NCBI RefSeq assembly: GCF_001194135.2
Contig: NC_069003.1
Coordinates: 4,574,529 to 4,617,757 of the forward strand
Reading direction: 5' to 3'
Length of the DNA: 43,229 nt
Source: Octopus bimaculoides
Lineage: Eukaryota
Numbering within the stretch: the first letter of the stretch is position 1; each line of letters begins with the position of its first letter. This document shows positions 4,507 to 42,850 of this stretch, piece by piece. Made by a program: the position numbers and the translations under genes. The notes below the pieces were generated by a model. The model did no database searches. It worked only from the letters and a program-made list of their open reading frames with translations, and was not told the origin of the DNA.

Positions 4507-4717
4507 CTTAGTGACGCTGTGAGCAAATATCTTGTTGCACTTGGCCAGTTTCCTGATATCCCAGATGTTCACTACACCATCGTCGCCACCACTAGCGAGG
4601 TAGTGTTCGCTCGGTGAGAATTTCAAGTTGAGGACAGATCTGTGTCGCCCTACGTAGGTGACCACCTCCGTTGGTTGTCGTTCATCGTGCAAACAAATGT
4701 TGCCAGCCATCGAACCA
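4507..4717 (-). CDS. cdc20-like: Cdc20-like WD40 exon (probably exon 5): GSMAGNICLHDERQ...LKFSPSEHYLASGGDDGVVNIWD...HSVTK
   Basis: Acceptor TTTTTACTCTCAG (4720-4718) and donor AAG|GTAAGG (4506-4501). 211 nt, phase 2 to 0. Matches Cdc20 GSRSGHIHHHDVR...LRWAPDGRHLASGGNDNLVNVW...HQGAVK. Confidence 0.92.
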
Positions 4718-4759
4718 CTGAGAGTAAAAACAAAAAGCAAATATTTCATCGTTCAATAT

Positions 4760-4950
4760 TTTCGGTTATTGGACTGCGGCCGGCCATGCTGGGGCACCTC
4801 CTTGAAGGGTTTAATCGAACAAATTGGCCCCAATACATATTTCCATTTTAAGCCAGATACTTACACTGTATGGCTCTTTTGATGAACCACTAAGGTATGG
4901 GACGTGAAAAACCTAACACCAATTGTCATGTAGGGTTGGGGTGTAAACAC
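4760..4950 (-). mobile_element. SINE family B, 3' half, next to the cdc20-like exon acceptor
   Basis: GACTGCGGCCGGCCATGCTGGGGCACC is the reverse complement of the family 3' end. Confidence 0.7.
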
Positions 4951-5371
4951 ACACACACGCGCGTGCGTGCGTGCGTGCGTGAACGTGTGTGAACGTGTGT
5001 GAACGTGTGTGAGCGTGTGTGAACGTGTGTGCGCGTGGGTGCGCGCGCGAGTTCATATGCATATGCTTGATTATCTCCGGAGCAGCATATCAGCTCTGTC
5101 ATCTTTTTTAATAGATGAAATGTTATTGGTAATTTCTTTTTTTTTTTCTTAGTCTTATGTCAGATTTGATCCAGCAGACCTACTATTCGAACCCCCGCCA
5201 CAGCATTTTATATATCAATGATTACACTACTCGAAGTAGTTATATCTTTAGAATAGGTCGGGTGTAAAGTGAAGGAAATTTTCCCGCTATTTCTGAGTTG
5301 TTGGGTGATCAAAAAGATTCGTTTTTTTAATAATTTTAGACATTATCATTACTATTATCGTCATTATTATT

Positions 5372-5575
5372 TAAGGCGGCGCGCTGACAGAATCGTTAGC
5401 ACGCTGGACAAAATGCTTAGCGGTATTTCGTCCATCTTTACGTTCTGAATTCAAATTCCCCCGCGGTCGACTTAGCTTTCATCCTTTCGGGGTCGATAAA
5501 TTAAGTACCAATGAAACAGAGGGGTCAATGTAATTGCCTAGTTCCCTCCCCATGAATTTCAGGCCTTGTTATCTT
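5372..5575 (+). mobile_element. SINE family A copy
   Basis: AAGGCGGCGCGCTGACAGAATCGTTAGC..TTCAAATTCC..TTTCATCCTTTCGGGGTCGATAAATTAAGTACC. Confidence 0.8.
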
Positions 5576-6931
5576 TACTTTATTTTAATTAATACGGATC
5601 AGTGGTAGAGAATCAACACAGATGCCGATGAAATTAGTTCTGCGGTCGATGAATTTACTACCAGTGTTATACTGAGGTGGATTAAACCAACTAAATTTCC
5701 TCCTCATCTAAACGTGCGTGACCTTGTACTCCCTTACTAGAAATCATTATTGGTTGTTTCGCTTATCTTTTTCTTTTTTTATATATATATATATATAATT
5801 ACCACTTAAATTGTTCTCTCTGATTAAGTTAAACACTTGTCCTATTGCCCTCGAGGTATTCCCGCTAAGAAGTTAAACCGAAAAGCACGCAGAACCTTGA
5901 AATTTAAACTTCGACAATTAACAAATTAAGTGTAAAATTAAAAAAAGAAATCATATACATACATACTATATATATATATATATATATAGGTAAAATGCGT
6001 GCATCGAATTTAAAAGCGCGATTTGTTTATTAAAGTGTGTAGCGAAAGCAGCTAGCTAGAAGTTAATCGATTAAAAGAACGACGCATGGCAACTAACCAT
6101 TCATTCGTAGCTCTTGTGTTATTTTGTAGAAGGAATTAAACCTTGCCAAAGCCAGATAGATGCATATATACATAGATGGAGGTTTTACTGCATGTTGTTA
6201 TTGTAATTAAATTTATATGTATTGTAGTTCTTAGAGTTGAAATTGTTCGTGTTGTTACATTTTGATTTCGTAAATTTGCAAAAGAAACCGCTGTACTTGA
6301 ACTCAACGACAAAGCAATTTAAATTTAATTAAATTGATATTGTTTTAAAGGCTGTACGAAGTATGTGTGGTGTAAGGCAGAGTAATTTATACAAACAGCA
6401 GTGCTAGCACTGTTTGTTCCTTACCGAAGACGCAGTCTTTGAATTAACTTCTGGAAAATATATATTTTAACTCCCTCAAGGCTTTCCATTTTCATTTTTA
6501 ATTTCTTTTGTCGCTCCTCCTTCGTGAAATTAACTACAAATGATGATCATTAGAATGGATGAATTAAACTATCACTTTGTTTAACACCATCTTATTCTTA
6601 AGTGCCTGGCGTATTCCACTCTACTACAAACATTGTGCAGAACGAGAAGTAGAACGAGTCAGCCATTTTGAAAAACAAACTAGACACGGTGGATAGTGTG
6701 ATCTTGGGTTTGCAGTTCAATTGAAAGGGGATGGTCACGGATGAAATGCCCTTTATCAGTTTTGTGCTTAGTCAGGACTGATATGATGCTAACCAACGAC
6801 AACAAAGGGGAGCTTGACAGGAATCGAACTCAAAGGAGCAGTTACTAAATGCTGTAAGCCTCCTTGTTCGACACACCGTTAATTAGTTCTTACGTTAGTG
6901 TGTTTCTGTGTGAGAGAGAGATGGGGGGAAT

Positions 6932-7039
6932 AGGCGCAGGTGTAGGTAAGGGGTAAGGAACTTGCTTCCCAGCCAAATGGTTCGGGGTTCAGTCCCACAG
7001 CGTGGCTCGTTGGACAAGTGTCTTCTTCTATAGCCTTGG
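6932..7039 (+). mobile_element. SINE family B, 5' part running into a gap
   Basis: GGCGCAGGTGT..GGTTCGGGGTTCAGTCCCAC..TTGGACAAGTGTCTTCTTCTATAGCC. Confidence 0.75.
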
Positions 7040-7623
7040 NNNNNNNNNNNNNNNNNNNNNNNNNNNNNNNNNNNNNNNNNNNNNNNNNNNNNNNNNNNNN
7101 NNNNNNNNNNNNNNNNNNNNNNNNNNNNNNNNNNNNNNNNNNNNNNNNNNNNNNNNNNNNNNNNNNNNNNNNNNNNNNNNNNNNNNNNNNNNNNNNNNNN
7201 NNNNNNNNNNNNNNNNNNNNNNNNNNNNNNNNNNNNNNNNNNNNNNNNNNNNNNNNNNNNNNNNNNNNNNNNNNNNNNNNNNNNNNNNNNNNNNNNNNNN
7301 NNNNNNNNNNNNNNNNNNNNNNNNNNNNNNNNNNNNNNNNNNNNNNNNNNNNNNNNNNNNNNNNNNNNNNNNNNNNNNNNNNNNNNNNNNNNNNNNNNNN
7401 NNNNNNNNNNNNNNNNNNNNNNNNNNNNNNNNNNNNNNNNNNNNNNNNNNNNNNNNNNNNNNNNNNNNNNNNNNNNNNNNNNNNNNNNNNNNNNNNNNNN
7501 NNNNNNNNNNNNNNNNNNNNNNNNNNNNNNNNNNNNNNNNNNNNNNNNNNNNNNNNNNNNNNNNNNNNNNNNNNNNNNNNNNNNNNNNNNNNNNNNNNNN
7601 NNNNNNNNNNNNNNNNNNNNNNN

Positions 7624-7935
7624 GGAGATGGCCGCACAGAGAGAGAGGGGGAGATAGCGACAGGAGGGGATAGCCACAGAGAGAGAGAGGGGGGCGGGAG
7701 ATGGCCGCACAGAGAGAGAGGGGGAGATAGCGACAGGAGGGGATAGCCATAGAGAGAGGGCGGGAGGGAGATAGTGACATAGTGAGAGACAAGGGAGGGA
7801 AATAGCAACGGAGAGAGGGGAAGGGAAATAGCAACAGAGAGAGAAGGGAGGGAAATAGAGACATAGAGAGAGAGGGGGGAAGGAAATAGCAAAAGAGAGA
7901 GAGTGAGAGAGCGACAGAGAGAGAGAGAGAGAGAG
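7624..7935 (+). repeat. Purine-rich (GA) compound minisatellite
   Basis: GGAGATGGCCGCACAGAGAGAGAGGGGGAGATAGCGACAGGAGGGGATAGCCA occurs twice, then degenerate subunits. Confidence 0.85.
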
Positions 7936-8369
7936 GGCGATGGTGGGAGAGATAAGTAGAAATGTGAAACGTCTCTTTCTCTGGCTTCAAGTCAGAAACT
8001 GTGAGATTATTTCAGTTAATCCAAGAAGCTCAGCAACAGATTTATTGTGCAACAATCGATTATTTACCGTTTTGCCTGTACGCAGCATTAGAATAACAAG
8101 ATTGCTTTAAAACAAGAGGCTTTTATTTAACCATAGAAAAACATCGTCAACAACAGAGTAAACATCAGCCGCTGAGTTAATACGGCACCGGTTACACGTG
8201 GTCGCTGGATCAACTTGCTAGAAATAGCAGAGAAAACGCCATCAAAATAACGCACGGTTATCGTGACTGGCAAAGGTTGAAGTAGGTTATATAGACGAAA
8301 CACCGAAATTAATATAGGATAGTCATGGTTGGAAGGTTATGATGAATCCATAACAGTGACATCTCAAGA

Positions 8370-9260
8370 GTCTCGAACCGCTACGTTGTGGGATCGTTCA
8401 GAAACCGACACCGGTTGTCAAACGAGGAGGATAAATACATTTTATACGACCGATAGAATAAGTACTAGGCATCGAAAGAATAAGTCCTGGGGTCGATTTA
8501 CTCGACTAAAGGCGGTGCTCCAGCATGACCACAGTCAAATGACTGAAATAAGTAAAAGAGTATACACATGACGGGCTTCCGCACAGTTTCCGAGCAACCA
8601 AATTTACTCAAGGCATCGGTTAGCCCAGAGATATAGCAGAATTTTTCCCAACGTGCTGCGCTCTGCTGCCAAGTGGGGCTGAAACCGTAACTGCTTGGTT
8701 GCATAGTGTGTTTCTTAATTGTAGCAAAGGCGCAGGCGTGGCTGTGTGGTAAGAAGCTTGCTCCACAACCACATGGTTCCGGGTTCAGTTCCGCTACGTG
8801 GCACCCTTGGCACAAAGCCTTGTGAGTGGATTTGGTAGACGGAAACTGAAAGAAGTTTGTCGAGCGTGTGCGTATATATGCACGTACATACATACATACA
8901 TACAGGCGTGGCTGTGTAGTAAGAAGCTTGCTTCCCAACCACGTTTCCGGGTTCAATCCCACTGCGTGGCACCTTGCTCAGGTGTCTTCTACTATAGCCT
9001 CAGGTCCACCAAAGCCTTGTGAGTGGATTTGATAGAGGGAAACTAAAAGAAGCCCATTGTATATGTCTATGTATCATCATCGCTTGACATCAGGTGTTGG
9101 TATGTTTACATCCCTGTAACCTCGCGCTTCGGCAAAAGAGATCGAAAGAAAGTACTAGGCTTAAGAATAAGCCCTGGGGTCGAATTGTTCAACAAAAACA
9201 CTTCAAAGTTGTGCTCCAGCATGGCCGCAGTCACATGACTGAAGCAGGTAAAAAAAAAAG
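8370..9260. mobile_element. Cluster of four family-B SINE pieces (+,-,+,+)
   Basis: 3' half 8370-8560, inverted 5' half 8565-8715, 5' half 8730-8870, full copy 8903-9260. Confidence 0.75.
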
Positions 9261-9282
9261 GACTATTGAACTGTTCACTTAC

Positions 9283-9485
9283 CAGTACTTCGCCGCCATT
9301 CGTACCAACGGCTAAAGATTTCCCGCTCAGGTTCCAAGACAAAGCTGTTAGAAACGCGCGCTCGTATTCGGAGAAATTGACGCGAATCCGCCGACAGGTG
9401 CCCTTCTCAGCACACCACACGTATACCGTTTGTTTCAGAGTTACAGCCAGGTAATTACTGCAGTTCCAATCCAATATATTGGTAT
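9283..9485 (-). CDS. cdc20-like: Cdc20-like coding exon 3 (WD40 blades 1-2): TNILDWNCSNYLAVTLKQTVYVW...FLTALSWNLSGKSLAVGTNGGEVL
   Basis: Acceptor ATATTTTTTTATAG and donor GTAAGT (9282-9277). 203 nt, phase 1 to 0. Aligns by eye to Cdc20 [23 protein letters not shown]...ISSVAWIKEGNYLAVGTSSAEVQ. Confidence 0.92.
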
Positions 9486-9574
9486 CTATAAAAAAATATA
9501 AAATATATATAATGAGCAGGAGTGATTGTGTGGTAAGAAGTTTGCTTCCCAACCACATGGTTCGGAACCATGTA

Positions 9575-9672
9575 GTTGGTTTACGTTACTCGAGACGCTA
9601 AATGTTCTAAAAACTGTTCGTAAACCAATTTGTTCGTTAAGAGAGGCGTTCATAAACCAAGGTTCCACTGTA
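9575..9672. mobile_element. Tigger/pogo-like MITE end
   Basis: GTTCATAAACCAAGGTTCCACTG|TA, the reverse complement of a CAGTGGAACC-type TIR with TA. Single end only. Confidence 0.45.
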
Positions 9673-10149
9673 GCAAAATTCTACTTTTGTTTTTGACCTT
9701 TTAGTATTTTTAATCCGTTAATCTTATATTCCAAAACACGTTTCGTCAATTCTTGCTAGAAATATTAAATTTTTCTAAGTTAAAAGTTATTTAGCGCCTT
9801 TATTTTTCAGTTTGTTCTGTTTTTTGTTTTTTTTTCATGAGAATTGTGGCTGTAGAGTGTGATGCAGAATAGAAGCATGGACATTTTCATTTATTAGAAA
9901 TAGTGAAAGCAAAACAAACAAATAACCATAATTGTAAGACACCATACTTGTTGATTAGCAAAGAACTGAAAGCTGAGAGACGGGAAGCTTCCTGACAGGG
10001 ACATAGGGATCAAAGCCTTTCTCACAGAACCCACCAAAAGCATGGAAGGAAGCAGCATTCGCTAATTGCAGAATGTGTGGGAGATTCGCAAATAATTAAC
10101 CGCATTGTCTCTGGCTACTTTTTTTTTTTTTTTTTTTTTTTGCTGTTTG

Positions 10150-10470
10150 CCATTAGAATGCGGCCATGCTGGGGCACCGCCTTGAAGAATTTTTAGTCAA
10201 ATGATCCAAATGTTTTTTTGTTTTGTTTTAGTCTTTGTTTTATTTTCTTCAAGCCCGGTACATTTTCTATCGATCCTTTTGCTGAACCGCTAAGTTACGT
10301 GGACGTAAGCACACCAACACTGGGCGTCAAGCGGTGGTGAGGGACAAAGACACACAAGCAGAGAGAGAGAGAGAGAGAGAGAAGACAGGCAGAGACAAGA
10401 CGGGCTTCTTTCAGTTTCCGTCTTCCAAATCCACTCACAAGGCTTTGGTCGGCCCGAGGGTATAGTAGGA
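10150..10470 (-). mobile_element. SINE family B copy with internal (GA)n
   Basis: TGCGGCCATGCTGGGGCACCGCC...CAAATCCACTCACAAGGCTTTGGTCGGCCCGAGG. Confidence 0.75.
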
Positions 10471-10769
10471 GACGCTAGAATTCTTATCCCACTGATCACG
10501 CTCTTCTTACGGCCATCATCTTGAAGGTGTTCGAACTGAGCAACCACCACATCGATTTCTCTGGTCTCGAAGGGTACGAGCACAACACCTCTCGCCAGGC
10601 CATATATGCACACGTGCAATATTATCATCTGTGACAATAAATCTATCCTGTATAAGTGGAAGTTGACATAAATATATACACGATTTATCATCAGCCACCG
10701 AACTCATCTAGAATAAGCTTAAGTAACACTTGTATACTAACAGACTCTTTTAGAAAAAAAACCCCTGCT

Positions 10770-11420
10770 TTTGTATACCATCATAGATTAAGGAAGCTAT
10801 AAGCAACGTACAAAGGAGAATTCAACATAAATAAACTATCAATACCTAGTGTTGTGAGCGAGTTAAACGATTTCCTATACGCATGCATAGTCACAATAAT
10901 AGAAAAATGCAGAGCTAAATAAACAATGTATTATTGCTAAACACAGGAGTCACTAAGATAAAATAGACAAGTGGAAGAGTAAATTAAAGTGCAGAATATG
11001 CATTCGAGGTTACGGCGCAAGTAAAACAATACAGATGGCAGTTAATAAGCTTTCCAGGAGAATAAAGAACGTATACATATACACCGCGTATGGAAAGTAA
11101 AAAGAAAGATAATAAAGAAGCAAAATGGCTGCAAACAACACCCGAATATTAAAAGACAAAAACAAAAGAAAGAAAATCCGCGTTAAATAATAGATTAAAA
11201 AGGTAAAGTGTTAGGGAAAATTGGCTCACAAAAACAACAAAAATAGAGAAATATTGCCTTTGATAATAACCGCCAAAAAGATCTATACGACAATACGCGG
11301 TAGCAACATAAATGATAAGAACCCTCGATAAACAAAATTTGGGAATATTTGGGAAAGGTATATTTTTTTATTTTGAAAATGAAGTATACGGGAAAACGAT
11401 ATTGGCCAGAAAACTATACG
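10770..11420 (+). mobile_element. Heavily decayed R4/Dong-like LINE ORF fragment (N-terminal, pre-RT region)
   Basis: A-rich stretch with broken peptides ELNDFLYACIVTIIEKC, KWKSKL and FGNIWE, resembling R4/Dong NELIYA..., PPWKRRLE and FWENIW motifs. Many stops and frameshifts. Confidence 0.45.
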
Positions 11421-11509
11421 GCACGTTGTGCGGCTGCTCTACGTTAGCCGCCCCAACCATCGCCACAGTACAGCAATGGTCCCCGAATTGATCCAGCTTT
11501 ACGTTAATG

Positions 11510-11930
11510 TATCCAGTTTCGGTCACTGGGATGCGGCCATGCTAGGGCACTATTTTGAAGGGGTTTTTGTTTCTTTTTTGAAGTCGATCAGATCTACACC
11601 TGTACATGTCTTTACAATTCTGATACTTATTCTATCGGACTATGTTGCCGGTCCGCTAAGTTACGGGCATGTAAACAAACCAACACCGGCGGCCAAATGC
11701 CGGCGTGTGACATACAGGCGCAAAGGCACACATACGTATATAAACATATACTCACACACACACATTCAAACGAACAGGCTTCCACACAGTGTTTACCAAA
11801 CACGCTCACAAAGCATTGGTTCGCATGGAACTATAGTAGAATGCACTTGCTCAAGTTGCCGTGCAGTGGGATTGAACCCGAAACTGCGTGGTTGCAAAAC
11901 GTGCGTCTTAACTACACAGCCACACCCGAA
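11510..11930 (-). mobile_element. SINE family B, full-length diverged copy
   Basis: Both the 3' (GCGGCCATGCTAGGGCAC) and 5' (GGGATTGAACCCG..ACACAGCCAC) ends are present. Confidence 0.75.
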
Positions 11931-12244
11931 CCTATTAGACCATGCCTGCGCCGCGCCTGTGTGAGAAAATCTGAAACTAAGAAATAGTTTCCGATTTAGA
12001 ATGCCCAAACTTATTTCTACAAATGTGCTAAGCATTGATGCTGACCTTAGTTTAATCAATAAGCGAGGTAAATGCAGTAAAAATAAGGGGTTCACTATAC
12101 CTTCACGTGTATTAAAATCGAGACTAAGAGTTATAACAGGTACGTTTCAACTGTGGTAGCGTTGATATCCATATTTTGTAGTTTATGAAACTTATGTCTA
12201 ATATATACTCGCCATGACTGAAACAAGTAAACGTCAATATATTA

Positions 12245-12600
12245 TTGGTTTAAAATTTTTGCACAAGTTCGGGGGAAAGGGTTAGACAATTATATCGACC
12301 CCAGTAGTTAAATGGTACTTATTTTATCGACTTCGATAGGACGAACGACTAAGTCGACCTCGGCGGAATTTGAACTTCGAACGTGAGACGGATGAAATCC
12401 AGCCAAATAAAACAGAACGTAGTATTATTGGTTCCAAATTTCAGAACAAGGCCAGCGATTTCGAGGAGGTGGGTAAGTCAATTACATCGGCCCCGGTAAG
12501 CAACTGGTACTTATTTTATCGATCTCGAAAGGACGAAAGGCAAAGTCGACCTCGTCGGAATTTGAGCTCGGAACGTCAAGACCGATGAAATGCTGCCATG
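12245..12600 (-). mobile_element. Two tandem family-A SINE copies
   Basis: AACTGGTACTTATTTTATCGA..AAGTCGACCTCGGCGGAATTTGA occurs twice. Confidence 0.7.
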
Positions 12601-13239
12601 TAAATCAGACTGTAGAAATATTGAGTGCATCGTGCCTAGAAACAATATGTATGGTCATGGGTGGAACGTCTTTGATCCTAAGATCTGACAGTTCAATGCT
12701 GACCTGGAGCTAAGCAACAACAAGTGTTCGGCTATTTAACGTCTATATCTATATATGTGAAACCCATTAAGACACCAACAAACAACACTGCCGAATCTAT
12801 AACAGCTAATTCCAAGCCATTGCTGCTGCTGCTGCTATGGCATGTTTCAGTTATTGATCAATCTATGTAGACACCAGATCGAACAAAAATCAATTTTTTC
12901 TATGGACAGTAAACCTGCTATCGGCATTCATGCTCATCTTCTATGCCTTTATGTAAACTTCATTATTTACCAAAGTACCAATACACAACGTGGGTTCTGA
13001 ATAAATAAATATACCATCAACATATGGATTTGGTCTCGCTGAAAACACCTTTTGTTTGTTTTTTTCTCTCTCTATCTCTCTCCATGAAGTCCTTTACTAA
13101 AATTAGTTTACCAAAGACAAAAAAAAACTAGCACCAATTTTGTGCTGATAGTACACAAATTAAGGCAAGACATCTGTTATTATTTTCAATATTGTTTTCC
13201 CATCCTAAACTGTTTTTTTTTTTTCATTCTTGTGATTAT

Positions 13240-13870
13240 GTTTATTATTTTTATACTATTTTTATAGATGTTATAATTTTTTTTATAAGATTTTCTTTAT
13301 AATTTTATATTTTTAAACATGATATCGTTATAATATTTTTGTGTACGCTATTGTTATTTATATAAGACTGTATTTTCATATTTTTATACTTTTATGTTAT
13401 ATTTATGTATTCGGTATTTTTTATAATTGCAATTTTTATATAAATTTATATTTACTATTTTACCTCTGTTTATATTAGATGCTATTTTTATACTTTTATA
13501 TGCAGTATATTTTCTATATATTTTTATATAGCATTTTATATTTGTACATGTTACTTTTATAATTTTTTACATATATAGATATATATATATATATATACAT
13601 ATAGTATTTCCTATTTGTACATGTTACTTTATTTTTTTTACATATATATATATATATATATCCTATATTTGTAAATGTGCTATTTTTATTTATAAGATTT
13701 TTATGGTATTTTTACATTTTTATTTCGTAAGATTTTTATATATGGTATTTACGTTTTTATAAACGCTATTTGTATTTTATAAGTATTTTATAAGATTTTT
13801 ATATATTTTTTATATAAGACATTTATAAGAATATGGCTTTCTTATATTTTATACAATTGTTTTATATTTC
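13240..13870. repeat. Extremely AT-rich low-complexity tract
   Basis: Recurring TTTTTATA-like motifs with almost no G/C. Confidence 0.85.
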
Positions 13871-14144
13871 TATCAATAGAATACGATCGAACTGTACAAG
13901 ACAAAAAAAAAAAAAACTTACTATGCATTTTCTGTCTTTTTTTTCCTTTTTTCATCCGATACCAATTGTTTTGTTTGTTAGCTTTTTATTGTTGCTTAAT
14001 GTTTTAAACATTTCCCAGTTATACAGCAACATATATCTTTTTAAGAAAGACCTGCACTTAATCCATCTGTAATTTTATTCAGCTATGGTCCATATACGTA
14101 ACGATTTCAACAAACCCTGACGATAAAAGAAACTGAAGCCTATT

Positions 14145-14146
<2 letters not shown>

Positions 14147-14200
<54 letters not shown>

Positions 14201-14277
14201 ACGCACACGCACACGCGCACGCGCACGCGCACGCGCACGCGCACGCGCACACGCACACGCACGCACACACACACACT
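14147..14277. repeat. Compound (CA)n/(CGCA)n microsatellite
   Basis: Direct inspection. Confidence 0.95.
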
Positions 14278-14359
14278 ACTCTCAAAGTGATTGACTGATA
14301 AAGTATCGAACTAAATCGAAAACTATAATCCTCGATATTTTTTATCTTCCCTTTTGTTT

Positions 14360-15062
14360 CATTCATTAGACTGCGACCATGCTGGGGTATCACCTTGAAT
14401 TTTTATCGAAGGGTTTGATTGACCCGAGACTATAACAGAAAACACTTGTCTAAGGTGCCGAACAATGGGACTGAAACCGAAACTACACGATTGGAAAGCG
14501 AACTTCTTAACCACACGGCTATGCTTTTTCTTCTTAGATAAGGTTTCCCTTTTCAGTCACTAATAAAGATCATCAAAAACTTTCCCCAATATACAGAGCG
14601 TCTCATTATGAGCTGCGGAGATATTATTTCTACCTTTATTATATATTATACACTTTCATTAATACACACGCTTGTCTCAATCTTAATTACTTTTGCATAA
14701 AAAAATGTGTCCCACCATTAAGTGGCACCATATTGTTCTTGGTAATCCTCTATGCAAATCTCGGTCATACTAAGGCACCGCCTTGAAGAATATTAGTCGA
14801 ATAAATCGAACCCAGCCTGGTACGTATTCTATTGGTGTCTATTGCCGCACCGCTACGTTATGGGGACGTAAACACACGAACACCGGTTGTCAAGCTGTGA
14901 TGGAAGACAGACACACAGACGACGGGCTTTCTACTAGTTTCTGTCAACCGAAGCCTCGTGAAAGGACATAGAAAACATTTTCCCAAGGTTCTACGTGGTG
15001 GGACTGAGCCCAGAACCATGTGCTTGGGAAACAAACTTCTTACCACAGTCACACCTACGCCT
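14360..15062 (-). mobile_element. Two internally deleted family-B SINE copies
   Basis: Family motifs at 14360-14520 and 14775-15062. Confidence 0.65.
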
Positions 15063-15109
15063 TAAAAAATAAATGTGTATAAATGTGTGTGTCTGTATTT
15101 TCATCATGC

Positions 15110-15280
15110 TGAACAGTTAACCTACACATTTTTCTTCCTGTTTTTTTTAATCCTTTCTGTAGTAGAGCGTAGGCTCGAAACGTAAAAGACTTTTCCATAC
15201 TCCTTGAGCGTTAAACTAATACACCTGCTTGTTGTTCCTACACCTTTATCTTTTGTTTTCTATAAATTTGAACTAACATA
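15110..15280 (+). mobile_element. Possible Penelope-like terminal fragment
   Basis: GTAGAGCGTAGGCTCGAAACGTAAAAGAC resembles the GAAGA..GC.CGAAACG motif of Penelope pLTRs. Confidence 0.35.
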
Positions 15281-15409
15281 TATATATATGTATAAGTAAA
15301 AGAGAGTATATATATAATTGTGTATATTTTTATATTTATATATATACATACACGCCTATAAACACGCATATATATACACACATATATAACGACGTACTAT
15401 AATACTTAC

Positions 15410-15547
15410 AAATGTCATCTCGTAGGCCAGGCATATCTAAGACCCGTGACGGACTTGTAATTAACTTTCGCTTCTTTCGTTTTGGTGATGAGAAGAAAAC
15501 ATCATCGACATCGACCTGCCATGGCGGGGAACTGACGGAGCTTCTTC
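15410..15547 (-). CDS. cdc20-like: Cdc20-like coding exon 2 (missed by the ORF track): RRSSVSSPPWQVDVDDVFFSSPKRKKRKLITSPSRVLDMPGLRDDI(Y)
   Basis: Acceptor TTTTTGTTTCTTTATAG (AG ends 15548) and donor GTAAGT (15409-15404). 138 nt, phase 1 to 1. RVLDMPGLRDDIY matches the family motif RILDAPEIRNDYY, and the split codon T+AT gives Tyr when joined to exon 3. Confidence 0.9.
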
Positions 15548-17621
15548 CTATAAAGAAACAAAAAATATAATAAATGCAGATTTATTCAATCGAGAGTTAT
15601 ATTGTTTAACAAACGGAAAGCGGTAGGGTGGTGGTTGTTTTGTCACACAAGTCACTCCTATTCGAGGAAACCCTTCAAAGACAAGCGTTCTAATAATGAA
15701 ACTCCAAACATGAACCCTAAAACTCAACAACAAATTATGACTACGGCATCCGCGCTATCCAACGTGCTTGCTCTTCCAATGGGGCATTGGACAAATTTGT
15801 GAGCTGGACTTCTGGGCCGCAGGCAGGAACATTACTTTGCCTGCTGGAACGTCAAAGCGACCGATGTATGTGGTCTGCATTCGGGAAAGAAGTGGTGAAC
15901 TCGTTGGTAGGAGCCGGCTCAACACATTCCGAGTAAATGCCGCTGCAAGGACGAGTATTTTACCCATGACCATCCGATCTCCTCAGACATCTACCCACCC
16001 AGCCATCCCCGCAGCCTAAATTATGTCTTTTCTTTTTTTAATTTTCGAAACATTTTGCACTTAAAAATAATTTTATAAAAATCAAAATATTGTCTGTTTA
16101 AAGAAAGCTAAAATTCAAACATTTCCTGTACAAACAGCTTGTATTTTTTGAAATCACGTTCACTTAATATTTCACAATGATTAAAATATTGTATTTAACA
16201 AAAGCGAAAAGAGAAACATTTACTGTAAAACCAACTCGTATTTTTTCCTTCGCAAGCTGAAGTCACTAAGACTTTCACCCAGATCGTGAAGTTTGTCTTC
16301 AAAATACAGACATTGAACATAATGTCTAATCGAAATGTTTGAGTTTCTTCTCTTTCAAGGTTGTTATTTTCAGAGTATTTTCCCCCCATTATACACCGTT
16401 TTGGGGTATTTATGAACACCCCCCACCACCAAATCTCAGGAATCCCTGGACCGATTTACGCGAAATATGTTCGGCTGCATTAAATGACAAACCAGCAAGC
16501 AATAAGAGCTTTGGTAGACACACAGATTTCTATTTCACTGACTATTGCAGCCTGCAGGGTGTTTTTGCATTATGTTTCATATGTGGTATATATATATATA
16601 TATATATATATACATACACACACACACACATACATACAGGGTGCGTAAGGTATTTGAGGACATTCCTTGTTACGTCCTTGTAACGTATCGGTTCGGCAAG
16701 AGACCGATATAATAAGTACCAGACTTTAAAATTGAAGGACTGAGGGTGATTTGTTCGACTAAATCTTTTCAAAGCGGTGCTCCAGCATGGCCGCAGTCCA
16801 ATGACTAAAACAAGAGATAGCAATGTTCAATTACTGGGCTTGTATAATTAAGTAACTCGGCTAATATTTCTTCTGCTAGCCAAATGGTAAAAGCATCAGC
16901 CATTATGATTTGAAACAATACACACAGTGACGTTTTGAGTTCAAATACCGCCAAGACCAACGCTGCTTTACTTTTTTCCGTGTTTTTTTTTTTTTTAACA
17001 ATGTACCAGTCAAGTGGGGATGTTTTAACTAATAATTCTTAGTTGGTCGAACAGCGGCATAGATATTTTCTTCGATGGGGTAAGATTTAGCTGCTATTTC
17101 TAGATGAGTTGTACAACCATGTAGAGACACCCTCGTTGCAAAGGGAGAGAGACGTGTGTTATTTCTACATAAGGTGAATAATTACGTATGGACTTCTTCG
17201 CTGGCTCTGTTAGCTTATCCTTTAAGGTTATTCCAGATTATACACGTGTATTTCTTTTATTATCATTTTTTATTTATAATTGAGCACAAATGACAAAATT
17301 AGGAAATCACTATTTAATTCATATCTGTAACAGGTGTTGTTAGGTTTCGAATCTTTCAACGCGAAGACGTGAACGTCACATTTTCCCCTTTCAACTGTGT
17401 GTGTAAGTGTGTAAGCGAGAAAAAAAAAAACAAATATTCGATTTTCTTCGTGTTTTAGAACACGTGTACTAGATTAAATATGTCAGATTAAAACCCTTTA
17501 AGTCGGTGCTTCTGCAGGGCGCCCTTCAATGACTAAAACAACCACAAAATATTTTGTGTGTGTATAGAGAGAGATTTAATGTCTCGTCAAAGAAAACTAA
17601 TATTCTAAAATTCAGACTTAC

Positions 17622-17940
17622 GGTTTTTAATTCCGTTTTTCGTCGTTAATGGAAGCACGTTTTCATTGTTGTTTTCTAAAGCGGCATTCAAGTAAATCTG
17701 GTAATTTTCGGCATCGCTATGTCCCAGACAAGGTGTACTAAGACGGCGCACTCCATTGCCATTTTGGTTCTCTTTGTTGGTTGAAATTACTTTCAAATGA
17801 GCATGGTCTACGTTTAAATTCGGTCGGAAAGGAATATAGCGATCAAATGAAAACGTGTGAAATGACCTCTCTAACAAAGTTGGACTGCATTGCAATGAAT
17901 CTTCGAAACTTTCGTATATTGCTATTGCTCTGTCGGCCAT
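17622..17940 (-). CDS. cdc20-like: Cdc20/Fizzy-family APC/C coactivator, divergent; coding exon 1 (N-terminal C-box and KEN box)
   Basis: ATG at 17940 in ACAATGG context with an in-frame TAA three codons upstream. Translation contains DRYIPFR (C-box, 17844-17824) followed by TNKENQ, the same order and spacing as Cdc20 DRYIPHR..SKENQ. Ends at a GTAAGT donor (17621-17616). 319 nt, phase 1. Confidence 0.9.
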
Positions 17941-24964: not shown

Positions 24965-25080
<116 letters not shown>

Positions 25081-25530
25081 ACAGGCTTCTTTCAGTTTCT
25101 GTCTATCAGATCCACTCATAAGGCTTTGATAAACCCGAAGCTATAGTAGAAAAGACACTTGCCCAAAGTGTCATGCAGTGGGACTGAACCAGGAATTATG
25201 TGGTCAGAAAGCAAGCTTCTTAGCACACAGCCACACTCGCACCTATGTATATTTTCCTCTGTTTTTAATTATTTCCATTTTCCCTCAGAGGAAAGATTTG
25301 TTTTTTTTTAATAAAGATACAAAACTTCACCATTGGAATGTAATTAACTAAAACAAATTCACATTTTAAACTTGAGAAAAACTTTACACCTACGTGTGTA
25401 TCAATGCCTGTCCCTCTGTCTATCTCTATGCATGTATGTATGTATGTATGTGTACTTATGTTAATGCATTATTTATATATGCATGCATGTATATAATAAG
25501 CATTTATGCATAAATGTAGAAGCATATGCA

Positions 25531-27464: not shown

Positions 27465-27910
27465 CTTACCACACAACTACTCCTGCGCCTATATATATAT
27501 ATTACTCTTTACTCTTTTATTTGTTTCAGTCATTTGACTGTGGCCATGCTGGACCACTGCTTTTAGTCGAGCAAATCGACCCCAGGACTTATTCTTTGGA
27601 AGCCCAGTACTTATTCTATCAGTGTCTTTTGCCGAACCTCTAAGTTACGGGGGCGTAAACACACCAGCATCGGTTGTCAAGNNNNNNNNNNCCGGAACCA
27701 TGTGGTTGGTAAGCAAGCTACTTACCACACAACCACTATTCTTTTATTCTTTTACTTCTTTTCGTCATTTGACTGTGGCCATGTTGGAGCACAAGCTTTA
27801 GTTGAACAAATCGACACCAGGACTTATTCATTGTAAGCTTAATACTTATTCTATCTGTCTGTTTTGCAGAACCGCTAAGTTACAAGGATGTAAGCACATC
27901 AACATCGGTT
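27465..27910 (-). mobile_element. Stacked family-B SINE fragments
   Basis: CATTTGACTGTGGCCATGCTGGA... occurs twice, with 5'-end remnants CTTACCACACAAC. Confidence 0.75.
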
Positions 27911-32328: not shown

Positions 32329-33346
32329 CTCTATATATACCTATATATATTACATGTATATACAAACATATGATACATATAAACTGTCGCTGGAAAAAAC
32401 AAAGTTTTTAAAAGCTGCCGGGTTTGTCCTGTTGAACGTTAGTCTGTCTTTCTTTATATTTCTCGGCCAAACCGTTAATTACCTCAAAGTTACTTCTCTC
32501 CTACGTTGATCCACACCTAAATATACACGTGCGCACACGCTGTCACACATCTCAGGCCTTATATAGTATATATATATACGCACATACACACATATATAAA
32601 GCAAAGCGTGTGTATGCGCACACACGTTTTGTCTTAATCTTTGATCTGTTCTGTTGTTGTCGCAAACTGTTATCATAACTCGCGTATGCGCGTACTCACA
32701 CGCACTCTCATGTTATATCCTTCCCTCGTATGATCTATTTCTTTGTGACACAGTCGCATCTTAAAGGCACATTATAAACACACACACACACGTTACACAC
32801 ACCCACACACACACGTTACACACACACACACATGCTCACGCGTGTATATACGCTCGCACATTCATAGAAACGCATCTTTTCTCTTTATCTCTCACTGCTA
32901 CACACACACACGCAACACACACACACATCACAGCAGACGCAGAGATACTGATGCAAACATCACAAGACACACACACAAACATACATACACACACACACAC
33001 TTATACATACACACACACACACTTATACATACACACAATCGCAGACACATACACCAACGGACGCTGTTAACATACAACATATTATCTTTCTTTCTCTCTT
33101 TCTCCCCCCTCACACATAGACACATACATATACATGTACCATTAGCAATCTATTACATACACACTCACACACAATACGATAAGGTGGACGCAGACAAGGA
33201 CGCTCTAAAACAAATATACACACTGTGAAGAAAAGAATATATATACACACACACACACACGTGCGGTAGAAAAGCTCACAACTATATACACACGTAGATA
33301 CACACACACATATATATACACACACGTATACATAGATACATACACA

Positions 33347-34138
33347 ATGAATCGTTTAGGAAGAAGATTGTGGCGGTTTAGTGTGGTCTACAGTAGAGAC
33401 TATCGTGGTAGTAGTAGAGGTGGTGGCGGCGGCGGTGGTGGTAGTAGTAGTAATAGTAGCAGTGGAGGTGGTGGCCGTGGAAGTCGAGGTGGTGTAGTGC
33501 TCACTGGTGTGTCGTTAGTGATGCTTGGTGGTACTAGTATGACACTGATGGCATCAAATAAACAAAAGGAACCATTCTTAACCTCCGTAGAACCAAAGTT
33601 ATCCTCCGTAGAACCAAAGTTATCCTCCACAGAACAAAAGCCATCCTCCCCAGAACCAAACTTATCCTCTACAGAAGAAAACTCACCCGACACAAAATCA
33701 TATTTACCCTTCACAGAACCAAACTTACTCTTCAAAGAACCAAACTTACTCTTCAAAGAACCAAACGTACCCTCCGCAGAACCAGATTTATGCTCAGAAC
33801 CAGACTACTCCGAAGAGAACCTACCCCGACGCAAGGAGAACCCTCTGGTTGCCTGCATCTCCCGCTTGCTGTGTAGGTTCAAAGCGGACTCGAGCAGCCG
33901 AATCAGTGAGGACCAAAAGCCGTTGAATAAAACAAAGTTACCTGGAAAGTTACCTACCTGTTGCGAGACTGATGTTAGTAAAACGACCAAAGAAGGCCCC
34001 ACCAAACACTGCACCACCCCTTGTGCTGATGAATCGGCGCAACCGTGCACCCCTCCAGGACTTGTCCTCAAGAAGGCCCTTGTTATTTTCCGACACGGAG
34101 CGCGAACCCCCATTCTGACTATTCCCAACATTGAACAG
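33347..34138 (+). CDS. ACP6: Histidine acid phosphatase, lysophosphatidic acid phosphatase type 6-like; coding exon 1 (264 codons)
   Basis: Long ORF from ATG 33347. Catalytic RHGARTP at 34091-34111 within LVLKKALVIFRHGARTPILTIPNIEQ, compared with ACP6 [24 protein letters not shown]. Donor CAG|GTTTGT at 34138/34139, phase 0. The Arg-rich, acid-poor N-terminus resembles a mitochondrial presequence. Confidence 0.88.
33569..33814 (+). repeat. Coding minisatellite, 21-nt / 7-aa unit (EP[K/N]LxSx), about 11 degenerate units
   Basis: TCCGTAGAACCAAAGTTATCC occurs twice in tandem, as does GAACCAAACTTACTCTTCAAA. Protein reads EPFLTSV EPKLSSV EPKLSST EQKPSSP EPNLSST ... EPNLLFK EPNLLFK EPNVPSA EPDLCS EPDYS. 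Confidence 0.9.
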
Positions 34139-34149
34139 GTTTGTCCTCT

Positions 34150-34245
34150 TATTATTATTATTATTATTATTACACATTCTTTATTTTATCCTGTATTACC
34201 CATAATGTTTTTCTTAATGTACCCTTGTGATTAACAAAGAAATCA

Positions 34246-40000: not shown

Positions 40001-40677
40001 CGTTTGACTTTTGCTTTACATTTGTACAAGTTGGCTCCAAGTCTCACCCAGAGACCTCAAGAGACAACAAGTTAGAAGTTCATGTTGGTGTTATGCTTAG
40101 GGTGCCATATATTTGGTTTTGTACATAGTATTGTTCTAAGGAATGCTTAAGAAACCATAAGGAAATTATGAGTTTGTTCTAAAATTTGAGATTACATAGA
40201 CAGTATTTTGTCTAGGATATGGGCAGTTCCCATGAGCACTATCTTTAGAATTTCTATCATTTTGGTATTTCCTGGTATCTGAGCTAGATAACAATCAGCC
40301 CCTTTTGCTGTCATTCCCAGGGCACCTATGACAATAGGTATTGTTTTCGTCTTCAGATTCCACATTTTGCTAATTTCTATTTCAAGATCTTTATATTTGC
40401 TCAGTTTTTGGTAGGTCTTGACAGATACGTTTATATCAATTGGGACAGTCATATCAATGAGGAGGCATGATTTTTGTCTGCAGTCTNNNNNNNNNNTTGG
40501 TAGGTCTTGACAGATACGTTTATATCAATTGGGACAGTCATATCAATGAGGAGGCATGATTTTTGTCTGCAGTCTTTCAATATAATGTCTGGCCTATTTG
40601 CATCTGTCTTTCTGTCAGTTTGAATGGTGAAGTTCCAGAGGAGTGAGATGTGATCATTTTCAAGCACTGGAGGTGGT
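40000..40677 (-). mobile_element. 5'-truncated R4/Dong-type non-LTR retrotransposon with restriction-like endonuclease (RLE) domain
   Basis: LLWNFTIQTDRKTDANRPDIILKD...LLIDMTVPIDINV..K..KYKDLEIEISKMW...IPIVIGALG shows the PD..D/E..K RLE signature. Flanked on both sides by (TTA/TAA)n. About 80 bp is duplicated across the 10-N gap at 40487-40496. Confidence 0.85.
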
Positions 40678-42685: not shown

Positions 42686-42850
42686 TAGGCGCAGGTATAG
42701 CTGCGTGGTAAGAAGCTTGTTTTCCGACTACATAGTTCCGGGTTCAGTTCCAGTGCATGGCATCTTGGGCAAGTGTTTTCTGCTTTAGCCTCAAGCCGAC
42801 CAAAATTTGTGAGTGGATTTAGTAGATGGAAACCGAAAGAAGACCATCAT
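42686..42850 (+). mobile_element. SINE family B, 5' half
   Basis: GGCGCAGGTATAGCTGCGTGGTAAG..GGGTTCAGTTCC..CTTGGGCAAGTG. Confidence 0.75.

Follow-up and report, generated by a model that had tools for sequence, protein, structure and literature searches.

Cortex, Ama1 and CDC20B illustrate how the APC/C (anaphase-promoting complex/cyclosome) can be re-targeted outside ordinary mitosis. Drosophila Cortex and Fzr2, Saccharomyces cerevisiae Ama1 and Schizosaccharomyces pombe Mfr1/Fzr1 are extra, fast-evolving paralogs that exist beside the mitotic co-activator; CDC20B, the vertebrate multiciliated-cell paralog and host of miR-449, is a divergent Cdc20 paralog with a non-mitotic specialisation, and Arabidopsis carries extra CDC20 copies (CDC20.3-CDC20.5). 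CDC20B is reported to be mostly limited to vertebrates (PMC8470418), and AtCDC20.3 and AtCDC20.4 lack the usual degrons (PMC9357983). The gene described here, LOC106884004 of Octopus bimaculoides, lies in part on the minus strand of a 43,229 nucleotide stretch of contig NC_069003.1, which we refer to as the window and to which positions refer throughout. On the evidence of sequence and predicted fold its product is a member of the Cdc20/Fizzy family, nearer Cdc20 than Cdh1, and it groups with Cdc20 paralogs of bivalves and gastropods that resemble the systems above in concept; these statements on the identity of the octopus gene are made with high confidence. The locus is already annotated in RefSeq as encoding an "uncharacterized protein" of 460 residues (XP_052832101.1), and we found no paper describing the mollusc clade: literature searching, part of which was loosely framed, returned nothing relevant on a mollusc or cephalopod Cdc20 paralog.

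The gene has eight exons, and the window carries exons 1, 2, 3 and 5, which encode 290 of the 464 residues of a composite octopus protein built from the O. bimaculoides exons together with exon 4 from Octopus sinensis. Exons 6-8 (ALAWCPWRSNV... to ...FLKTIR) are off the window, 11.5-16.4 kb past window position 1. The composite matched PF24807 with 279.7 bits (cut-off 200) over the entire profile (1-292/292). The two WD40 pieces encoded in the window matched the same profile on their own, at positions 1-75 (E=1.9e-18, 67 bits) and 109-177 (E=1.8e-12, 48 bits), and both also matched human CDC20 in the PDB, while tblastn of the Argonauta orthologue against the window exons gave E-values between 1e-32 and 1e-15 per exon. 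Judged by these matches, the similarity of the window exons to the Cdc20 family is far beyond chance. A phmmer search of the PDB with the composite returned human CDC20 (217 bits), S. pombe Slp1 (190 bits), human FZR1 (166 bits) and yeast Cdh1 (159 bits). The octopus protein shares family, fold, C-box and C-terminal isoleucine-arginine (IR) tail with Cdh1/FZR1, and its similarity to Cdh1 falls about 50 bits below that to Cdc20, which bears out the original prediction, made from the window sequence, that the gene is of Cdc20 type rather than Cdh1 type.

The AlphaFold model of the 458-residue Argonauta orthologue showed disorder over residues 1-125 and a propeller with a predicted local distance difference test score of ~85-90. 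All of the 28 best PDB matches found for it with Foldseek were Cdc20 or Cdh1, the top match being human Cdc20 (template modelling score 0.91, root-mean-square deviation 2.1 A, 34% identity). The predicted plan starts with a disordered, C-box-containing N-terminus, continues with a WD40 propeller of seven blades and ends in the IR tail. Like canonical Cdc20/Fizzy/Slp1, which was its best match in both sequence and structure, the octopus protein has a C-box, a linker with KILR-like and CRY-like motifs, the seven-blade propeller, the IR tail and a receptor for the destruction box (D-box). Unlike canonical proteins, which share 59-71% identity across animals, it is only ~34% identical to them. It also lacks their alpha1/Box1/Box2 N-terminus and is ~60-70 residues shorter, and it differs from them in a largely changed KEN receptor, a variable ABBA groove, a partly degenerate Mad2 motif and its position in a separate clade.

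The close relatives of the octopus protein were those of Argonauta (68% identity), Sepia (76%) and O. sinensis. A next group, at 38-44% identity, consisted of proteins of 435-476 residues (with one 530-residue model, from Pomacea) and included bivalve members from Ruditapes, Mercenaria, Mactra, Crassostrea, Pinctada, Argopecten, Sinanodonta and Tegillarca and gastropod members from Haliotis, Physella, Aplysia and Pomacea. These clade members came from an exhaustive search of representatives, as a word-index profile search gave mostly bacterial WD40 noise. With a profile of the clade, members scored 340-790 bits, whereas no canonical Cdc20 exceeded 345 bits. Ten further divergent representatives, examined for Cortex-like, CDC20B-like or cephalopod sequences, proved instead to come from plants, fungi, a hagfish, an amphipod and unnamed contigs. 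A neighbour-joining tree of 123 sequences, 38 of them named canonical Cdc20 and none a named Cdh1/Fzr sequence, separated canonical Cdc20 from the clade in every one of 200 bootstraps (100%), and the cephalopods were likewise united in 100%. BLAST agreed with the tree in that the best matches of the octopus protein were the abalone paralog (330 bits) and the clam paralog (317 bits), with any canonical protein at 223 bits or less. The octopus protein is consequently not placed with canonical Cdc20, and the divergence noted in the original prediction stands; the paralog, which had been proposed to be lineage-specific, is not specific to cephalopods, since bivalves and gastropods carry it too.

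The automatic names of the clade members are inconsistent and include "cell division cycle protein 20 homolog", "cdc20.2/20.4", "meiotic fizzy-related protein 1-like" and "uncharacterized". The name "meiotic fizzy-related protein 1-like", given by NCBI to the Pomacea member, rests on similarity only. The names "cell division cycle 20.5/20.2, cofactor of APC complex", given to proteins of O. sinensis, Argonauta and Aplysia, come from the Arabidopsis isoforms, which unlike the mollusc genes are products of independent plant duplications, so that the shared name reflects best-hit naming and not orthology. Cortex, Fzr2, Ama1 and Mfr1, whose sequences were left out of the tree, did not surface near the clade in the best 150 of 1.84 billion representatives. 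In contrast to the mostly vertebrate range reported for CDC20B, the clade is found in molluscs, and it keeps the C-box and the IR tail.

A canonical Cdc20 and the paralog were found in the same species in at least seven cases (Mercenaria, Ruditapes, Mactra, Pinctada, Tegillarca, Physella and Aplysia). The two Mercenaria genes are in one assembly and on the same chromosome, 44 Mb apart, and this separation rules out a tandem origin at least for Mercenaria. All seven intron positions were common to the octopus and clam paralogs, whose 8-exon structure is identical, and five of the seven were shared with the clam canonical cdc20; as these positions are shared, the duplication was DNA-based and old. 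The abalone and clam paralogs were 44% identical whereas the canonical Cdc20 of the same two animals were 71% identical; sequence change in the paralog clade is about two times as rapid as in canonical Cdc20.

Two canonical-type Cdc20 genes were present in Aplysia, Haliotis, Liolophura, Mya, Dreissena, Potamilus, Lingula, Owenia and Tubulanus. The two lophotrochozoan types form a conservative group, 'b', and a more divergent group, 'a', and both keep all of the receptor residues; the Cdc20 that UniProt lists for Spisula (O61588) belongs to group 'a'. With the 'a' and 'b' canonical types plus the paralog, molluscs often have three Cdc20-type genes.

For Octopus itself we infer paralogy from the composition of the clade. 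The alternative is that the gene is the sole cephalopod cdc20 orthologue and that its substitutions are common in molluscs. Such a gene would fit the observation that no canonical cephalopod Cdc20 was among the best 120 of 6417 matches to the Biomphalaria Cdc20, although this query was itself a divergent 'a'-type protein. The octopus protein nests, however, among proteins of bivalves and gastropods whose species also possess one or two canonical Cdc20 genes, and the canonical mollusc Cdc20 keep every receptor residue that is changed in the octopus protein. Cdc20 is, to our knowledge, essential in every eukaryote studied, which also argues against this alternative, and we consider it very improbable.

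The roles of individual motif residues were carried over from human and yeast structures by alignment, and human numbering is used for the receptors. The five D-box receptor residues, D177, P179, V200, Y207 and E465 (roles in PMC3690534), were all identical in the octopus protein. The IR tail, ...FLKTIR, is encoded by exon 8 outside the window (L002:44221-44333); it was found in 12 of the 15 clade members and is replaced by LR or VR in Argonauta, Sepia and Mactra. The C-box pattern DR[FY]IP was also present in 12 of 15 clade sequences, at residues 6-33, and two of the remaining three were N-terminally truncated models. The retention of the APC/C-docking C-box and of the D-box receptor, as originally proposed, was therefore borne out.

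The KEN receptor gave a different picture. Its nine residues, D184, Y185, Y186, Q310, N329, N331, T377, Q401 and R445 (defined in PMC9357983 and PMC3690534), were invariant in 38/38 canonical Cdc20 from sea anemone to vertebrate. The octopus residues at these positions are D, I, Y, R, D, G, E, K and K, so that seven of the nine are changed. N331G was found across the whole clade and N329D nearly so; the GGNDN loop change reported in the original prediction is therefore real and clade-wide, and it affects two KEN-receptor residues. Q401 and R445 were changed only in cephalopods and are kept in bivalves and gastropods. The ABBA groove (Y240, K259, Y279 and V295; residues from PMC9357983) reads S, K, T and E in octopus. 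K259 and V295 were invariant in canonical proteins and variable in the clade, and Y240 and Y279 were replaced.

Canonical Cdc20 proteins carry their C-box at residues 74-144, and the position of the clade C-box at residues 6-33 is explained by a missing N-terminal extension. The strict Box1 motif RW[QE][RK]K was found in 27 of the 38 canonical proteins and in 0/15 clade members. Alpha1 and Box1 (human 27-RWQRKAKE-34) are segments to which phospho-Mad1 binds, and the checkpoint complex requires them for its catalytic assembly (PMC9605988). The whole alpha1/Box1 Mad1-binding N-terminus is missing from the clade.

The octopus KEN tripeptide is positionally equivalent to the vertebrate KEN, and canonical invertebrate Cdc20 proteins lack a KEN at that place. 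The O. sinensis protein has KGN in its place, and neither Argonauta nor any other clade member carries the tripeptide. The order of C-box then KEN, which had been taken as a mark of Cdc20, is accordingly a vertebrate feature and does not discriminate between the families. The motifs themselves were present as originally read (DRYIPFR, KEN, VLDMP, NVLPL for KILRL, KRKL for CRYI and GGDDG for GGNDN), and the interpretation of two of them as losses has to be revised. The canonical Mad2 motif is [KR]I[LI]S[FY]KxKAP, of which the clade keeps an [IV]LP[LI] core. The octopus sequence NVLPLTTKNG contains the [IV]L core and lacks the basic residue and the downstream proline. The full pattern [KR][IV][LM]x5P was found in the bivalves Mercenaria (KILPICSTP) and Argopecten (RIMAITQRP). 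The KILR motif also contacts Apc8 and is needed for APC/C activation (PMC10858191); because of this second requirement its partial retention is uninformative on Mad2, and the proposed loss of KILR needs to be qualified. The proposed loss of the CRY box does not hold. R166 and I168 are the functionally important CRY-box residues, R166 being the critical one (PMC10858191), and R166 together with a hydrophobic residue at 168, which is L in octopus, was conserved in both canonical and clade proteins, the literal CRY being confined to vertebrates. Taken at the level of the aligned residues, all known elements for APC/C docking and D-box binding are retained in the octopus protein, the KEN and ABBA sites lose conservation and the Mad1-binding N-terminus is gone.

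One alternative is a specialised Cdc20 paralog to which the spindle checkpoint still applies in the ordinary way: Mad2 would bind the KILR-like motif, the CRY-core arginine would help to make the contacts of the checkpoint complex, and only the choice of substrate would be altered by the receptor changes. This alternative is favoured by the [IV]LP[LI] core at the position of the Mad2 motif and by the exact fit of the Mercenaria and Argopecten sequences, by the clade-wide presence of the critical arginine and the hydrophobic residue of the CRY box, and by the retention of Q401 and R445 in bivalves and gastropods. In human cells, however, a KEN-receptor mutant loses the checkpoint as fully as a mutant unable to bind Mad2 (PMC10858191), and N329 and N331 are replaced clade-wide; the seven receptor residues changed in octopus include Q401 and R445. 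Box1 and alpha1 are entirely missing, the octopus motif has neither its basic residue nor its proline, and the retention of a motif that is also an Apc8 contact is no argument for Mad2 binding. We regard continued ordinary control as unlikely, though it is the alternative to be taken most seriously.

We favour, with fair confidence, the explanation that the octopus protein and its clade would be an extra Cdc20-family co-activator that is weakly coupled to the checkpoint. Such a protein would dock to the APC/C through the C-box and the KILR-like motif (on Apc8) and through the IR tail (on Apc3), and with Apc10 it would present D-box substrates by way of the retained inter-blade D-box receptor. 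With a changed top-face KEN receptor and a changed ABBA groove between blades 2 and 3, it would be predicted to recruit substrates that have a D-box only. Lacking the alpha1/Box1 segment as well, it would also be a poor partner for the KEN1 and ABBA motifs of BubR1 and for Mad1-catalysed loading of Mad2, and so would assemble weakly into the mitotic checkpoint complex. For uncoupling, the seven changed KEN-receptor residues of octopus, the unconserved ABBA positions and the missing alpha1/Box1 segment, which go beyond the original prediction, are stronger evidence than the motifs cited there. The finding that a KEN-receptor mutant abolishes the checkpoint in human cells makes it reasonable to propose uncoupling for the octopus protein, and we would put this part of the explanation at somewhat below an even chance.

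A second alternative is that the protein is a WD40 scaffold and no longer an APC/C co-activator, as has been proposed for vertebrate CDC20B in centriole amplification. The fast evolution seen in the abalone and clam comparison, the degeneration of two of the three degron or regulator receptors and the existence of family paralogs in non-mitotic roles (CDC20B in multiciliated cells) are all compatible with a scaffold. The C-box, IR tail and D-box receptor, on the other hand, have no known role beyond APC/C docking and degron binding, and they are conserved across three mollusc classes, with a ratio of non-synonymous to synonymous substitution rates (dN/dS) of 0.045 for the N-terminal region between the two Octopus species. 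A scaffold without co-activator function is, in our estimate, improbable.

Several observations weigh against a co-activator that is weakly coupled to the checkpoint, or against the phylogeny on which it is placed. Binding and activation of the APC/C by the clade proteins are predictions from motifs. The CRY-core arginine, which is needed for checkpoint-complex function, is retained; a KILR-like core is conserved and some bivalve members match the Mad2-motif pattern in full, so that Mad2 may still exert control; and the loss of the KEN receptor is graded, being most complete in cephalopods. The composite protein takes one exon from another species. The tree is only distance-based, and long-branch attraction is possible. 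Copies from annelids (Lamellibrachia/Ridgeia) and third copies from the brachiopod Lingula joined the clade at 97% neighbour-joining bootstrap; their BLAST scores favour canonical Cdc20, and they were not counted as clade members. To these points is added the lack of a canonical cephalopod Cdc20 among the best matches described above.

If the co-activator reading is right, the clade protein would be a natural separation-of-function form of Cdc20, in which the D-box receptor and APC/C docking are kept and the KEN, ABBA and Mad1 interfaces are gone. Such a protein would be useful for asking which contacts serve checkpoint inhibition and which serve activation. Mollusc oocytes typically arrest in meiosis, and the protein would also be a candidate regulator of these arrests. 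A more far-reaching version, which we offer as speculative and rather doubtful as a whole, is that molluscs keep a third, ancient co-activator that is blind to KEN and ABBA motifs and has no Mad1 docking, would act on D-box substrates only and would escape sequestration by the spindle checkpoint, and would serve where anaphase has to go ahead free of the checkpoint, for example in oocyte meiosis or rapid cleavage.

The octopus gene is intact and under strong purifying selection. Over 431 aligned codons, O. bimaculoides and O. sinensis differ by 59 synonymous and 13 non-synonymous changes and show neither stops nor indels; dN/dS is 0.056 overall and 0.062 for the propeller. Full-length intact orthologues were found in Argonauta and other molluscs, and the oyster member is an uninterrupted 435-codon open reading frame (ORF) on a 1490 nucleotide contig from a public sequencing run, which, the frame being uninterrupted, represents a spliced transcript. 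A check for pseudogene decay that had been attached to the original prediction accordingly found an intact gene.

Exon 1 starts with an ATG at 17940 that is preceded by in-frame stops, and it matched the Argonauta orthologue (tblastn E=1.7e-26) and XP_052832101.1 (100% match). Exon 2 encodes a basic, SP-rich linker, the CRY-box homologue and the start of the propeller. Exon 3 corresponds to PF24807 profile positions 1-75 and includes the D-box pocket residues V (LAVTL) and Y (VYVW). Exon 5 corresponds to profile positions 109-177, the middle propeller blades, and its encoded protein reads GSMAGNICLHDERQ...ASGGDDGVVNIWD...HSVTK. All internal boundaries of these four exons are AG/GT, and their end phases are 1, 1, 0 and 0. 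Exons 1-3 joined to give an open frame of 660 nucleotides. Joining exon 3 straight to exon 5 gave a frameshift with a stop after 11 codons; the first base of exon 5 finishes a codon begun upstream, and the exon needs two nucleotides from the one preceding it. The four exons of the original prediction are thus correct in their coordinates, splice sites and phases, and the single continuous protein assembled from them is not, as a hidden exon lies between the last two.

The hidden exon was located by comparison with O. sinensis. The window was 100% identical, in reverse orientation and gaps included, to the O. bimaculoides chromosome CM046623.1 (GCA_001194135.2), which has the same run of N between exons 3 and 5. 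Aligned with the O. sinensis contig VCDQ01004494.1 (L001), the window showed colinearity at ~90% identity, and its position 7039, which on the minus strand is the first base past the gap, corresponded to L001:600. At L001:215-312 there is a 98 nucleotide AG/GT exon running from phase 0 to phase 2, which encodes LLDAERTKLIISFRSSERSHIASLAWNNTSFC. Its protein was 75-78% identical to the equivalent segment of Argonauta and Sepia, and it covers PF24807 profile positions 76-108, the stretch skipped between the two WD40 pieces of the window. The exon projects to approximately window positions 7327-7424, within the N run, and colinearity with O. sinensis places the conserved coding exon 4 of O. bimaculoides in this gap. 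The break of frame between exons 3 and 5 is explained by this one exon, because its 98 nucleotides supply exactly the phase that is needed. tblastn with four orthologues did not find exon 4 or exons 6-8 elsewhere in the window. At 7627-7937 an imperfect, GA-rich tandem repeat (periods 26-84) borders the gap on its upper side, and the failure of the assembly at the hidden exon is probably due to it.

A decaying pseudogene, in which the break between exons 3 and 5 is real, would account for flanking exons that are out of frame when joined directly and for public Octopus models that are fragmentary or patched. It would leave unexplained the AG/GT exon of O. sinensis, which lies at the colinear position and repairs the frame exactly, the low dN/dS over 431 codons with no stops, and the intact orthologues of Argonauta and other molluscs; we consider it extremely improbable.

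The RefSeq and metaclust models of the gene restore the frame with a filler exon that lies in the interval between exon 3 and the gap. Its donor, GTTAAA, is weak, and its sequence does not resemble the orthologues' conserved exon. It recurs in an older 319-residue model and in a 115-residue model (UniProt A0A0L8I5T5), and most likely entered the annotation as an artefact of the gap. The comparison has exposed an annotation error, the LOC106884004 model having a filler exon in the place of a conserved propeller exon. The O. sinensis orthologue is itself split, with exons 1-3 on scaffold CM016881.1 (L003) and exons 4-8 on the unplaced 48.9 kb contig L001. The scaffold is broken by a 100-N join at L003 25496-25595, ~800 nucleotides after exon 3, and L001 begins just 214 nucleotides before exon 4. 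Because of the split, the annotation treats this one gene as two partial proteins without relation to each other, "cell division cycle 20.5, cofactor of APC complex-like" on L003 and "cell division cycle protein 20 homolog" on L001. The coordinates of the features in the window are collected in Table 1.

Table 1. Features of the Cdc20-like gene LOC106884004 in the window, in order of transcription.
Feature	Position	Strand	Description
Coding exon 1	17622..17940	-	319 nucleotides, end phase 1; residues 1-106, predicted disordered N-terminal region
C-box DRYIPFR	17824..17844	-	Residues 33-39; Apc8-docking motif, 32 residues from the N-terminus
KEN tripeptide	17767..17775	-	Residues 56-58
NVLPL	17647..17661	-	Residues 94-98; homologue, by position, of the KILR motif (Mad2 interaction and Apc8)
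Coding exon 2	15410..15547	-	138 nucleotides, phase 1 to phase 1
CRY-box homologue KRKLIT	15456..15473	-	R166 and I168 equivalents kept as R and L
D-box-receptor strand RVLDMP	15429..15446	-	Exon 2
Coding exon 3	9283..9485	-	203 nucleotides, phase 1 to phase 0; initial portion of the WD40 propeller
Filler exon of RefSeq/metaclust models	8132..8217	-	86 nucleotides, QVDPATTCNRCRINSAADVYSVVDDVFLC; restores frame
Assembly gap	7040..7623	.	584 N; same gap in the chromosome-level assembly CM046623.1
Coding exon 5 (exon 4 of the original prediction)	4507..4717	-	211 nucleotides, ends phase 0
ASGGDDG in place of the invariant ASGGNDN loop	4576..4590 (GGDDG)	-	Exon 5

The introns of the gene hold microsatellites, namely (CACACG)n with ~20 copies at 14156-14276 and a GT-rich 10-mer array at 4973-5045. 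More than 25 short interspersed repeat fragments with 65-98% mutual identity were found across the window, among them those at 6953-7036, 8480-9052, 9167-9253, 9516-9563, 11831-11926, 25039-25250, 27510-27827 and 42687-42842. Copies of these repeats flank exon 3 on both sides and sit at the lower edge of the gap, and many of the spurious long ORFs of the window are translated frames of them. No tRNA genes and no Rfam families were found in the window.

Two further open frames lie elsewhere in the window. The first, on the minus strand at 40195-40524, comprises 110 codons (...TIPIVIGALGMTAKGADCYLAQIPGNTKMIEILKIVLMGTAHILDKILSM) with a 10-N gap within it. It had no Pfam match and may resemble the C-terminal tail of retrotransposon ORF2 proteins. 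The second, on the plus strand at 33209-34231, comprises 341 codons, has an internal Met at ~33560 and ends in ...LVLKKALVIFRHGARTPILTIPNIEQ followed by a likely donor site. It also had no Pfam match; it contains an RHGxRxP signature, and its weak best PDB match was lysophosphatidic acid phosphatase type 6 (4job, E=0.23), with a phytase next. These features suggest that an ACP6-like gene for a histidine acid phosphatase, whose transcription would run divergently to that of the Cdc20-like gene, has its first coding exon at 33209-34231.

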